This document shows positions 8,734-25,627 of a stretch of 64,000 bases of DNA, piece after piece. Positions within the stretch are counted from its first letter, which is position 1. Each line of letters starts with the position of its first letter. Location of the stretch: positions 612,771 to 676,770 of the forward strand of contig RHPI01003156.1 of the NCBI GenBank assembly GCA_009103225.1, read 5' to 3'. Both the position numbers and the translations under genes were made by a program. Under the pieces are notes generated by a model. It had not been told where the DNA came from, ran no database searches, and was given only the letters and a program-made list of their open reading frames with translations. The DNA is from Chlorokybus atmophyticus (lineage: Eukaryota; Plantae; Mesostigma and Chlorokybus algae).

Positions 8734-11700
8734 CTAGCGCTCTCGTCCTTCCTCAGATTCGGGGAACATCGTTAGCGCGGGCGCTCCACGCGGTGAGTTA
8801 ATAATCGTGGGGCCAACAACAGTGCTGATGGAGCGGGTGACAACCGCGGGTGCTGTTGTTGTGTCGGTGTCGTCGTTATCGGCCTCGAGTGGGAAATGAT
8901 GGAAGTTCAACTTCTCACCTGCCTGCTGCAGACCTCGCCGCTGCCGACGCCGCCGACCCAACACCAACACCAGAGCCGACACGCCAACGAGGGTACCGCC
9001 GCCAATGACAGTACCTGTTGCAGGCAATAGGTTGGTGTGATTGGGTACTGTGGGTTGCTACAGTGGTGATGTTGGGATGAAGAACGTGTGTTTATATTGT
9101 GGGTGTGTGCTTGACGTTGAAGCACATTGCTCACCCATCCACACTACTAATATTCAATGTGTACTTGGACTAGGACTGAGTGAGTTGGTTTATGATAGAG
9201 TCGCTCTTGTGAGCGTGCAAGGTCCACTCACCTGCAATAACGCCGGTCTTGCTGGTTGTGGCTTTGGGCGCAACAGGTGGGGTTGGGGACGGTGCCGGTG
9301 TGGTGGGCGTGTGTGCCGGTGGTGGACTGTTGGGTGATGAAGGCGAGGCCGCCTTCACATAATACAACACAAAGTACCCATTCACTTGACTCGTCTTTGC
9401 TGTGACCGTCTTGGCAAGCTGCGTGTAAGTCACTACCGACACGGCGTTGGTTTGCTCGCCGGAAACCAACATCATCCTCACGCCGTATACGCTGCCCGCG
9501 GGAGGTGTTGGGACGTTCTTGAATGTGATTGTGCCTGAGGCTGTGAGTGAACTCCCGCTAGCATCGGTAATGAACATGCCGCCCGCAGCAATGTTGGGGA
9601 CGACATCGCCGGATGCGTTGGCAGCGAGAGCAACAACGTCCTGGCTGACAATGACAATATCGGCTGGGGCCATTATCGTGCCAGTGAAGGAGAAATCGGG
9701 CACAGAGCCCGTGACAGTGCCGTTATCGGCCCTCTGTGCACTTAAAGCAATGGACTCGCGTGTGAATGTGTCTGCCGGGAAACCTGGCAAGTCTTGTTGC
9801 ACCATCACTCTCCCGAGCGTGGTCTGCATGTCGGCGATGCCGGCAACATGTTGGTTTGCATCTCCATCGCACGCGGCGATGTTGATGTAGTTGTTGAGGG
9901 CGTCGGCGTAACACGTGTAAGGCGTGTCTGCGCCGGGCGAGCTCGGGGCTTCCAACGTGTCTGATGTTGTGGCTATGCGGTTGAGTTGTGTCGATATCAA
10001 AGTCAATGCAGATGTTGCTGTTGAAGAAGACAACTCTGCAGGGTTGGATATGAGACTAGCGAGTGCGCACACTTCCATCATAGCGAGCTCGTTGCCGAAT
10101 AGTGTCACAGTATCCAATGCAGCGATATCGCTGACCATGGCGGATGTCAGTGTCATCAACTCCTCATCACCCCCATTGCATTGATATCCATTGGAAGTAT
10201 CGCTGTACAGAGAAGCCCACACTTGCGCATCAGCCAACACTGTGGCCGTGTCGAGTGTGCGCACAGCAACATCAAAGTTGGCTGCCTTCTGCGCAGCAGC
10301 CCTGTCTCCGATATCGGATAGAAGCCTCCTTCTGTTGCCTTCACCGATATCAAACGCACCCGATATTAACTGCAGGCCCTCAGGCAGGCCATTTGGATTG
10401 CTTGAGGCAGGGTTGGGGTCTTTTACATACACAACTATAGACACGCTGTTGCCCGCCGGCAATGTGGCCATGTGGCGGTTGTTTGTCGTGAAGGGTGAGA
10501 TAAGAGTCTCCACGCCACTCACGCCAACCTTGTATCGGTACTCGTACACAACACTGCCGTCATCAGCGCTCATACTCGCCGCGCAGCCCGACACAACTAT
10601 GTTAAAGTCTGTCTCACCCGCAACGTAGGGAGGAGACCCAACATCAGGCGTCACGCTGAGCTTGCAACCACTCGGATCCCCACGTACACGCAAGCTGATG
10701 GCAGCAAAGCCAACACTTGCACTTTTGCTCCCACTCACGCTGCACGCAAACTTCACACTTTGGCCTTTTGGTAGTGTGCCAGGCTTAATGATAAGGATAT
10801 CGGACTCTGCATCGTCAGTGTAGGCCGATATCGGTGCCAGAGCTCCTGCATCTGTGCTGAGCGCCCAGCTGTAGGAGACGATATCGCTTGTATCGATGAT
10901 GTCGGCTTCGCATGCGAGGAGGAGCTCGTCTGAAGAAGATATCGTGGCGGTATCGGGGTCCCGAGGCGATATTACCGTGACGGGGATAACACCCGAAGCC
11001 TTGACTGTGATAATAGCTGTGGCCAAAACTCCAACACGAAGTGTAGTGAGGGGTTCTTTCGTTGTTGCGAGCGTGACAACATAAACGCCTTCCGGTAAGG
11101 TGTTTGCGGGGATTGTAGCAACAGCACCAATAGCAATGTCATCGTCCTCGGGTGCAAATATGGCTGATATCGCAGCACTTGGGACTGATGTTGAGCTGCC
11201 TTCGGCAGCGGATATAAACCAAGAGTACTGAAACTTGGCTGGCGACGCGGTGATATCTATCGAGGCGCCCTCGAGCAAAAGAGGATGAGAAGCTTGCACA
11301 ACACGGTCGCCGTATCGGATGCGCGATTGAAGCGGGGAGCTCGCCACAGAGACGGATATCGCGTCCGTTGATGTTAATGTTGGGTCCGAGCGTGCTGTTA
11401 CGGTCAAGCTAAACGCGTACGCCTGACCGGGAAGGAGGTACCCTGCGGGTATTGTTAATGTGGGTGTGTGCACCGTCGCCATGTGAACGCTCGGAAACGT
11501 GTCGAACAAGTTAAGGACAGGTCCATCGGTCACAACCCAACGGAAGTCCAAAGCCTCATTGTTGGCAGTGTTGTCAAGCACGCACACGTTGTCGACGAGG
11601 GCCACTTGCGAGGGCTCAATGACGTGACTGTATAATGTTGTGTCGGACCCGCCCGAAACCTCAATCCCAACACTAGAGAAGTCGATTGTTACAACTGGGA

Positions 11701-23700: not shown

Positions 23701-25627
23701 GAGAGAGAGAGAGAGAGAGAGAGAGAGAGAGAGAGAGAGAGAGAGAGAGAGAGAGAGAGAGAGAGAGAGAGAGAGAGAGAGAGAGAGAGAGAGAGAGAGA
23801 GAGAGAGAGAGAGAGAGAGAGAGAGAGAGAGAGAGAGAGAGAGAGAGAGAGAGAGAGAGAGAGAGAGAGAGAGAGAGAGAGAGAGAGAGAGAGAGAGAGA
23901 GAGAGAGAGAGAGAGAGAGAGAGAGAGAGAGAGAGAGAGAGAGAGAGAGAGAGAGAGAGAGAGAGAGAGAGAGAGAGAGAGAGAGAGAGAGAGAGAGAGA
24001 GAGAGAGAGAGAGAGAGAGAGAGAGAGAGAGAGAGAGAGAGAGAGAGAGAGAGAGAGAGAGAGAGAGAGAGAGAGAGAGAGAGAGAGAGAGAGAGAGAGA
24101 GAGAGAGAGAGAGAGAGAGAGAGAGAGAGAGAGAGAGAGAGAGAGAGAGAGAGAGAGAGAGAGAGAGAGAGAGAGAGAGAGAGAGAGAGAGAGAGAGAGA
24201 GAGAGAGAGAGAGAGAGAGAGAGAGAGAGAGAGAGAGAGAGAGAGAGAGAGAGAGAGAGAGAGAGAGAGAGAGAGAGAGAGAGAGAGAGAGAGAGAGAGA
24301 GAGAGAGAGAGAGAGAGAGAGAGAGAGAGAGAGAGAGAGAGAGAGAGAGAGAGAGAGAGAGAGAGAGAGAGAGAGAGAGAGAGAGAGAGAGAGAGAGAGA
24401 GAGAGAGAGAGAGAGAGAGAGAGAGAGAGAGAGAGAGAGAGAGAGAGAGAGAGAGAGAGAGAGAGAGAGAGAGAGAGAGAGAGAGAGAGAGAGAGAGAGA
24501 GAGAGAGAGAGAGAGAGAGAGAGAGAGAGAGAGAGAGAGAGAGAGAGAGAGAGAGAGAGAGAGAGAGAGAGAGAGAGAGAGAGAGAGAGAGAGAGAGAGA
24601 GAGAGAGAGAGAGAGAGAGAGAGAGAGAGAGAGAGAGAGAGAGAGAGAGAGAGAGAGAGAGAGAGAGAGAGAGAGAGAGAGAGAGAGAGAGAGAGAGAGA
24701 GAGAGAGAGAGAGAGAGAGAGAGAGAGAGAGAGAGAGAGAGAGAGAGAGAGAGAGAGAGAGAGAGAGAGAGAGAGAGAGAGAGAGAGAGAGAGAGAGAGA
24801 GAGAGAGAGAGAGAGAGAGAGAGAGAGAGAGAGAGAGAGAGAGAGAGAGAGAGAGAGAGAGAGAGAGAGAGAGAGAGAGAGAGAGAGAGAGAGAGAGAGA
24901 GAGAGAGAGAGAGAGAGAGAGAGAGAGAGAGAGAGAGAGAGAGAGAGAGAGAGAGAGAGAGAGAGAGAGAGAGAGAGAGAGAGAGAGAGAGAGAGAGAGA
25001 GAGAGAGAGAGAGAGAGAGAGAGAGAGAGAGAGAGAGAGAGAGAGAGAGAGAGAGAGAGAGAGAGAGAGAGAGAGAGAGAGAGAGAGAGAGAGAGAGAGA
25101 GAGAGAGAGAGAGAGAGAGAGAGAGAGAGAGAGAGAGAGAGAGAGAGAGAGAGAGAGAGAGAGAGAGAGAGAGAGAGAGAGAGAGAGAGAGAGAGAGAGA
25201 GAGAGAGAGAGAGAGAGAGAGAGAGAGAGAGAGAGAGAGAGAGAGAGAGAGAGAGAGAGAGAGAGAGAGAGAGAGAGAGAGAGAGAGAGAGAGAGAGAGA
25301 GAGAGAGAGAGAGAGAGAGAGAGAGAGAGAGAGAGAGAGAGAGAGAGAGAGAGAGAGAGAGAGAGAGAGAGAGAGAGAGAGAGAGAGAGAGAGAGAGAGA
25401 GAGAGAGAGAGAGAGAGAGAGAGAGAGAGAGAGAGAGAGAGAGAGAGAGAGAGAGAGAGAGAGAGAGAGAGAGAGAGAGAGAGAGAGAGAGAGAGAGAGA
25501 GAGAGAGAGAGAGAGAGAGAGAGAGAGAGAGAGAGAGAGAGAGAGAGAGAGGCTTACCAGCAGCTAAGGGACACAGCATTGCTGTGATCACCATCACAAC
25601 CATCACAACCATCGTTCGTGATGCCAT
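8734..25627 (-). CDS. Giant type I membrane protein: signal peptide, (PPA)n, ~24 filamin/Ig-like repeats, REJ/PKD-like region, Pro-rich stalk, TM, short tail (>=~4,030 aa)
   Basis: Exons 25627-25558, [gap]21467-19927, 19767-13600, 13442-13289, 13107-9232 and 9014-8734 (TAG). All resolvable junctions are GT-AG and phase-consistent. Signal peptide MASRTMVVMVVMVITAMLCPLAA. A recurrent xxDxxGN/NN motif with GxYxVxY strands marks the filamin-type Ig fold. REJ-like text includes FRWVVTDG..LTIPAGYLLPGQAYAFSLTV. TM VIAGTVIGGGTLVGVSALVLVLG is followed by RRRRQRR. Confidence 0.88.
19826..19893. repeat. Intronic (CACACG)n hexamer repeat
   Basis: acacgc units inside intron 19768-19926. Similar CA/CG-rich tracts occur in introns 13108-13288 and 13443-13599. 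Confidence 0.85.
21469..25551. repeat. ~4.08-kb perfect (GA)n tract; probably a gap-fill artefact extending a real intronic (CT)n microsatellite
   Basis: No interruption over 4 kb. A single n at 21468 joins it directly to coding sequence without a splice acceptor. Confidence 0.85.

Follow-up and report, generated by a model that had tools for sequence, protein, structure and literature searches.

The REJ-GAIN ectodomain module is best known from polycystin-1, a protein connected with kidney disease, and from the sperm egg-jelly receptors. Filamins, whose repeats are the other main element of the protein described below, are cytoplasmic actin cross-linkers carrying CH domains. The receptor suREJ1 combines N-terminal ligand-binding modules (EGF and C-type lectin) with a REJ domain and a subsequent GAIN/GPS-type region, in which the GPS motif is present. 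It has been described as a single-pass REJ receptor (PMC4700764). Two further single-pass proteins have ectodomains of filamin-like immunoglobulin (Ig) domains: FUS1, which contains seven such domains (IgL) without REJ or GAIN, and GEX2, whose ectodomain is a string of them (PMC13601591). In this study we describe a gene of Chlorokybus atmophyticus in which a filamin-type rod stands on a REJ-GAIN module. It occupies positions 8734-25627, on the minus strand, of a 64,000-nt stretch of contig RHPI01003156.1 (the window, in whose coordinates all positions are given). Its predicted product of about 4,010 aa is likely to be a type I surface glycoprotein serving as a long-reach adhesion or tether receptor, with an ectodomain of the polycystin-1/suREJ family.

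The gene is real and intact. Its six exons and five introns give 12,030 coding nt (4,010 codons), all five introns are bounded by GT..AG with mutually consistent phases, as read from the splice sites, and the 12 kb of coding sequence contain no in-frame stop. Much of this sequence is visible as three very long minus-strand open reading frames (ORFs) lying head to tail (21303-19810, 497 aa; 19800-13321, 2,159 aa; 13324-9170, 1,384 aa). The initial annotation of this locus proposed a giant protein of at least 4,030 aa; the spliced model is of 4,010 codons. From the N-terminus, the predicted protein begins with a signal peptide and an (APP)n stretch, continues with 25 filamin-type Ig repeats, REJ and a GAIN-like domain, and ends with a stalk, one transmembrane (TM) segment and a tail of ~70 aa. 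The parts of the gene, in the direction of transcription, are as follows.

Exon 1, 25558-25627, minus strand: start codon and predicted signal peptide (MASRTMVVMVVMVITAMLCPLAAG), ending in phase 1 at the donor GTAAGC and joined in frame to exon 2
Intron 1, 21411-25557, minus strand: 4,147 nt, nearly all of it a perfect (GA)n/(TC)n tract
Exon 2, 19927-21410, minus strand: (APP)n Pro-rich stretch, Ig repeats 1-4 and the first half of repeat 5, with the donor GTAAGT after ...NSTM
Exon 3, 13600-19767, minus strand: 2,056 codons with the second half of Ig repeat 5, 17 more repeats and the start of the next
Exon 3b, 13289-13442, minus strand: 154 nt encoding the middle of one Ig repeat (LLHPDG...RDAFGN...ATLS), recognised by three-frame translation and present in the public model P0001
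Exon 4, first part, 12353-13107, minus strand: the end of the split repeat, followed by Ig repeats 24 and 25
Exon 4, REJ module, 10343-12352, minus strand: about six predicted beta-sandwich domains, the Pfam REJ match itself lying at 10400-11584
Exon 4, GAIN-like domain, 9332-10354, minus strand: helical subdomain and beta-sandwich, with the last strand ...QVNGYFVLYYV
Exon 4, end, 9232-9352, minus strand: Pro/Thr/Ser-rich stalk (ASPSSPNSPPPAHTPTTPAPSPTPPVAPK...), ending in phase 1 at the donor GTGAGT
Exon 5, 8734-9014, minus strand: TM helix, RRRRQRR stop-transfer motif, cytoplasmic tail of ~70 aa and stop codon (8734-8736)

At the 5' end, the acceptor at 21411/21410 (tctccag/GA) brings the signal-peptide exon into frame with the (APP)n stretch, which leads directly into Ig repeat 1. 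Farther downstream, when the repeats of the protein were compared with a profile derived from themselves, ~45 residues of one repeat turned out to be absent at the junction of exons 3 and 4, and these are encoded by exon 3b. The reading of 13109-13599 as one single intron was rejected, since exon 3b (13442-13289), which lies inside it, supplies the absent middle of the repeat. Two Ig repeats proved to be cut exactly at introns, with complementary halves on each side, and this precise division provides independent support for the splicing model. The single TM segment (TVIGGGTLVGVSALVLVLG), followed by RRRRQRR, and the short tail, both of which had been noticed in the initial annotation, were read in exon 5. 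Inspection of the downstream ORFs revealed no evident further coding exons 3' of exon 5 on the same strand; the nearest downstream ORF (6930-7754, plus strand) is on the opposite strand, its 274-aa product being of low complexity and rich in Pro and Ala.

An exhaustive protein search recovered a public model of the same gene (P0001, 3,826 aa), 100% identical to the query, which agrees with our model on exon 3b and on the junction of exons 4 and 5. The two differ at three places. Because P0001 begins at an internal Met, neither signal peptide nor (APP)n stretch nor Ig repeat 1 is part of it; 39 nt (15331-15369) are spliced out as a GT..AG mini-intron; and its exon 3 stops eleven codons earlier. 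The repeat affected by the mini-intron scored 63.9 bits against the repeat profile with the 13 residues retained and 41.7 bits without them, which suggests that the mini-intron is probably an artefact of gene prediction. The corrected N-terminus of the gene model is new in this analysis.

Domain searches were made exon by exon, spliced stretches being taken only from P0001. Filamin (PF00630) was matched in exon 2 (E 2.5e-16, 60.7 bits), in exon 3 (E 2.1e-113, 371.9 bits, spread over 11 stretches) and in exon 4 (E 3.2e-14, 54 bits), in each case well above the Pfam cut-off of 26.9 bits, and P0001 as a whole scored 457 bits. The tandem filamin-like Ig repeats claimed in the initial annotation are thus borne out, the profile of own repeats giving a count of 25 against the ~24 estimated there, and the motifs listed with them (KDRFGN, RDKYNN, FDSFGN and RDAFGN) are every one present. 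Pairwise identity among the repeats averages 21%, with a maximum of 38%, and the repeats are old. The closest sequence match of the rod in the PDB was the Dictyostelium gelation factor (E 4.5e-24), and the Ig-like fold of each repeat is predicted from matches to solved filamin repeats. The protein carries 56 N-glycosylation sequons, from which a heavily glycosylated rod would be expected.

The claim of a REJ-like region was likewise upheld. REJ (PF02010) was matched in exon 4 with E 1.2e-34 and 120.2 bits against a cut-off of 25, over profile positions 3-404 of 452. An AlphaFold2 (AF2) model of the C-terminal 1,133 residues (m44c477e79952), computed from an alignment with 47 relatives, had a mean predicted local distance difference test score (pLDDT) of 72.5 and comprised about six beta-sandwich domains (the REJ module), a helical bundle and a poorly resolved part. 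Residues 1-670 of this model were all-beta, with pLDDT mostly of 80-95. In the alignment, columns of Cys and Trp are conserved; of the eight Cys of the REJ module, C61, C130 and C257 stand in (nearly) invariant columns of the 48 sequences, and the consensus pair Y-x-W-x-C...C is missing from this protein. The REJ domain is said to have six stereotyped cysteines (bioRxiv 10.64898/2026.10.13.757955). A fold search with the whole 1,133-aa model returned generic multi-Ig chains (contactin, titin, alpha-2-macroglobulin) and was uninformative for the region that follows REJ.

This region, overlooked in the initial annotation, became interpretable when its ~340 aa (341 residues) were folded alone. 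The resulting AF2 model (m4cabca73f1cc, pLDDT 74.7) consists of eight helices and, after them, a beta domain of ten strands, and the top 10 Foldseek matches were all GAIN domains of adhesion G protein-coupled receptors (GPCRs), with E 2.4e-6 for BAI3. The VIA Z values for eight GAIN structures were 17.6 (BAI3), 17.0 (BAI2), 15.3 (CELSR1), 15.2 (latrophilin-1), 14.7 (GPR110), 13.9, 12.8 and 11.9; these alignments cover both subdomains (for BAI3, 251 residues aligned at a root-mean-square deviation of 3.7), and unrelated helical repeats scored Z of 10.9 or less. Moreover, a family profile compared with PDB sequences matched the GAIN domain of ADGRF1, at a marginal E of 1.3e-3. The modelled structure thus identifies the predicted post-REJ region as a GAIN fold, with helical subdomain A and beta-sandwich subdomain B. 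There was no Pfam match to GPS (PF01825) in the exons or in P0001 and no HL[ST]xF motif in a pattern search; no cysteine occurs after residue 3521 of P0001, and the four-Cys set of GPS is absent. The strand equivalent to that of GPS has the sequence QVNGYFVLYYV, and between it and the TM segment lies a stalk of ~40 residues rich in Pro, Thr and Ser. Neither a PLAT domain nor an 11-TM or 7-TM region was found by Pfam or among the ORFs downstream on this strand, and the protein has one hydrophobic segment, then ~70 aa and the stop; the cytoplasmic tail gave no Pfam match. A GAIN fold without GPS, as indicated by the model, is the second new result of this analysis.

When the REJ-GAIN module was used in an exhaustive search, 310 proteins reached E of 1e-3 or below, and none of them, except for P0001 itself, exceeded ~29% identity. 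(A word-based protein search with exon 4 gave no matches, but it considered only candidates of 710-2,261 aa and requires shared words, so that this result is uninformative; a look-alike search of a protein atlas returned nothing beyond generic REJ clusters, all scoring below 0.9.) The closest named relatives include two proteins of Cymbomonas tetramitiformis (KAK3265849.1, 6,723 aa, and KAK3281997.1, 5,498 aa), as well as Mv26028 of Mesostigma viride, KAK9787018.1 of Symbiochloris irregularis and proteins of Mesotaenium, the cryptophyte Hanusia phi, Mantamonas and Ploeotia. Over the REJ-GAIN module the proteins of Cymbomonas, Symbiochloris and Mesostigma are ~26-29% identical to the window protein, with E of 1e-45 to 1e-55 for Cymbomonas and ~1e-31 for Symbiochloris and Mesostigma. 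The similarity of Mv26028 takes in the REJ module but, of the region that follows it, no more than the beginning.

The combination of Ig repeats and REJ, from which an undescribed receptor had been suggested in the initial annotation, turned out to recur: two or more filamin-like repeats were detected with our own profile N-terminal of REJ in 30 of the best 150 relatives. Pfam confirmed Filamin and REJ together in every one of those relatives that was scanned (Cymbomonas, Mesostigma, Mesotaenium, Symbiochloris, Hanusia and metagenomic proteins). The four proteins of Cymbomonas, Symbiochloris and Mesostigma named above all share with the window protein the placement of filamin repeats N-terminal of REJ, although repeat number and length (1.5-6.7 thousand aa) differ; the Ig rods of the window protein and of a Cymbomonas protein are colinear over ~1,500 residues, at 22% identity. 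The gene is not a one-off, but part of a widespread family. Our literature search found no experimental study of the relatives in Cymbomonas, Symbiochloris and Mesostigma, and no paper describing algal filamin-REJ proteins. The initial annotation had considered a well-characterised, constitutively expressed, widespread family as the case that would speak against its reading; of these attributes we found only the last, the family being widespread in algae and protists, automatically annotated and uncharacterised.

Some of the relatives with Filamin and REJ are multi-pass proteins with GPS, like polycystin-1, and others are single-pass. Canonical GPS motifs are retained in the proteins of Mantamonas (P0009) and Hanusia (P0049) and in one metagenomic protein (P0021), which indicates that the loss of GPS is specific to a sub-family. 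The window gene, KAK3281997.1, KAK9787018.1 and one metagenomic protein agree in having a last strand of the form FNG[FY][FY], a single TM segment and, between these, the Pro-rich stalk; KAK3265849.1 has the degenerate strand and the stalk, with no hydrophobic segment detected after them. These common traits point to a conserved single-pass, GPS-less sub-family in green algae, both streptophyte and chlorophyte, which is newly recognised here.

Two other observations concern the wider family. The fourth-best relative of the REJ module is a protein of the liverwort Marchantia paleacea (P0004, KAG6557914.1) in which Pfam detected REJ only (E 3e-30); REJ proteins of land plants with motile sperm may merit a look at sperm expression. 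In addition, eleven near-identical Ig+REJ multi-TM proteins of ~2,574 aa (the P0023 cluster, with P0153-P0162) are encoded on metagenomic contigs of ~22.4-25.3 kb, most of them near 22.6 kb.

When the window protein is compared with the described systems, each shares a part of its plan. Compared by description, suREJ1 is also a single-pass type I protein with N-terminal modules and a membrane-proximal REJ and GAIN-type region; however, it has EGF and C-type lectin modules and GPS, where the window protein, nearly three times as long, has filamin Ig repeats, a degenerate GPS and an inserted Pro-rich stalk. Pfam gave only Filamin and Ig_GEX2_N N-terminal of REJ, with no C-type lectin or EGF modules there. 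In polycystin-1 and PKDREJ, as in the window protein, REJ and then a GAIN fold follow a long N-terminal array of beta-sandwiches, but in polycystin-1 this array consists of PKD domains instead of filamin repeats, and the PLAT domain, 11-TM part, GPS cleavage motif and C-terminal coiled coil of the polycystin-1 family are missing from the window protein, with its single TM segment. Filamins and the gelation factor (ABP-120) belong to the same repeat fold family and include the best sequence matches of the rod (E 4.5e-24 and E 1.5e-52). In contrast to the cytoplasmic, CH-bearing filamins, the window repeats are predicted to be extracellular, behind a signal peptide and with many N-glycosylation sequons.

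A closer relationship to FUS1 and GEX2, as expressed in the description "FUS1/GEX2-like" of the initial annotation, was not upheld. Both proteins share with the window protein a single-pass topology and a filamin-like Ig ectodomain, a trait common to many unrelated proteins, but FUS1 has seven IgL domains alone, whereas here there are 25 repeats with REJ and GAIN. In exon 3, Pfam gave 372 bits to Filamin and 119 bits to Ig_GEX2_N (E 1.1e-34). When 1,001 residues of the rod were searched in a range of 550-1,750 aa, which includes GEX2, animal filamins A, B and C were recovered (E 1.5e-52 and weaker), and GEX2 was not among the matches of this word-based search, which scores only the 8,000 candidates sharing the most words. 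FUS1 was absent from the PDB sequence matches of the rod. The animal filamins recovered all carry precomputed matches to PF23616, so that this family is not diagnostic of kinship with GEX2. The best relatives of the rod being gelation factor and filamins, these comparisons suggest no specific kinship with FUS1 or GEX2 beyond the generic filamin fold.

Positions 21469-25550 form a perfect, noncoding (GA)n tract of 4,082 nt, with one N at 21468 and with GC and AT skew both of 1.0; it is part of intron 1 and, on the coding strand, amounts to a single giant polypyrimidine run. The long ORFs listed over it in several frames are artefacts of the dinucleotide repeat. A reading of the (TC)n tract as coding poly-Ser-Leu was rejected, as the canonical donor GTAAGC after the signal peptide and the acceptor at 21411/21410 restore the frame. 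The purity of the tract over 4 kb suggests an artefact of assembly or polishing, although a real, very long microsatellite is possible. Two other regions assigned to introns (13109-13599 and 19768-19926) are rich in simple repeats of the (TG)n/(GTGTGC)n type, which give Cys-Val runs in the wrong frame and carry mechanical ORFs beyond the true splice donors. Elsewhere in the window there is an assembly gap (a run of N from 37204), and the total of 197 N includes single ones at 80 and 28202.

How might such a protein work? As a filamin Ig domain measures ~4 nm, the 25 domains would make an extended rod with a length on the order of 100 nm. Its Pro-rich tip and distal Ig domains would be presented to a ligand, which might sit on another cell, on wall or mucilage, or on a surface. 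The REJ-GAIN block would be a rigid membrane-proximal base, and the Pro-rich stalk, probably glycosylated, would keep the GAIN domain apart from the membrane. With no predicted GPS cleavage and no multi-pass channel part, the protein would function as a receptor for adhesion or tethering, and any signal would pass through the short tail or a membrane partner instead of a tethered agonist or a pore of its own. The broader class named in the initial annotation, a surface receptor for adhesion, recognition or mechanosensing, remains the most sensible functional class.

Several points weigh against the adhesion or tether receptor. The adhesive role is a reading of the protein's predicted anatomy, and the beta subdomain of the GAIN model reached only moderate confidence (pLDDT 55-80). 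Loss of cleavage is predicted from sequence alone. The splice model is likewise built on sequence features: the gene was found in three public sequencing runs, in each at a low share and always as short contig fragments, one of which spans an exon-intron boundary, and since these contigs contain intron sequence, the runs are DNA. (A single "joint" in the runs, from 13197 to 13559, was rejected as a splice; its ends are CA..TA, 20 foreign letters lie between, and one side has 24 letters.) Exon 1 and intron 1, finally, depend on the 4-kb dinucleotide tract, which may be an assembly artefact. The lack of RNA support, this tract with its N in the 5' part and the three departures of P0001 from our model could also be cited in favour of a chimera, produced by assembly or annotation from neighbouring filamin-repeat and REJ genes, or of a decaying pseudogene. 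We regard this as very improbable, because the Ig repeats run on through introns 2, 3 and 3b with fitting halves and phases, stops are absent from the 12 kb, and the same domain order exists in other species. Above all, two complete Ig repeats and the REJ module share one uninterrupted exon of 1,292 codons (exon 4), so that their fusion is independent of splicing; the idea of a chimera is largely refuted by this exon.

Two other roles deserve consideration beside that of an adhesion or tether receptor. The REJ-GAIN module is a hallmark of the polycystin-1 family and filamin Ig rods are established as force-bearing elements, from which a mechanosensor like polycystin-1 or an adhesion GPCR could be imagined, the rod passing force through GAIN to a partner channel (e.g. 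one like PKD2). We consider such a sensor improbable: the GPS site and its cysteines are missing, which makes the canonical exposure of a tethered agonist impossible, a flexible Pro-rich stalk separates GAIN from the membrane, and the protein lacks a PLAT domain as well as any 11-TM or 7-TM part. The other possibility is a receptor for gamete or zoospore recognition, a counterpart of suREJ1 or FUS1/GEX2 in an alga with cryptic sex, present only on sexual cells and binding to a partner carried by the opposite gamete. Links between REJ-domain proteins and gamete recognition have been made repeatedly, as for suREJ1, PKDREJ and the male-gamete-specific Esi0130_0068 of Ectocarpus (PMC4700764), and a similar link is provided by the GGC proteins of Cryptosporidium (bioRxiv 10.64898/2026.10.13.757955). 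FUS1 and GEX2 are also single-pass proteins with filamin-like Ig domains (PMC13601591), and for Chlorokybus meiosis genes have been published, while sex is not known (PMC7027972). Nevertheless, we judge this role unlikely, given the absence of specific similarity to GEX2 or FUS1 beyond the fold, the different architecture (25 Ig domains instead of 7, plus REJ-GAIN) and the relatives in many protists, which fit a general family of surface receptors. A narrower version, in which the streptophyte and chlorophyte sub-family (this gene and those of Cymbomonas and Symbiochloris) is the green-lineage counterpart of suREJ1, with an uncleavable GAIN domain and a role in gamete or zoospore recognition, seems to us a distinctly long shot. 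If true, it would add to HAP2 another surface marker with which a hidden sexual stage could be sought in an alga without observed sex. On the present evidence, however, the window gene has no bearing on whether this alga has sex.

To conclude, the analysis of this locus corrects the public gene model, in which signal peptide, Pro-rich tip and first Ig repeat are restored, and extends the REJ-GAIN module to green algae in a simplified form, predicted to be single-pass and without a GPS site, under a filamin rod of 25 domains. The protein, as predicted from its sequence, would also offer a natural case of a GAIN domain that works without autoproteolytic cleavage. As a likely adhesion or tether receptor, it is a tractable candidate for the way in which early-branching relatives of plants may attach to, or sense, their surroundings.

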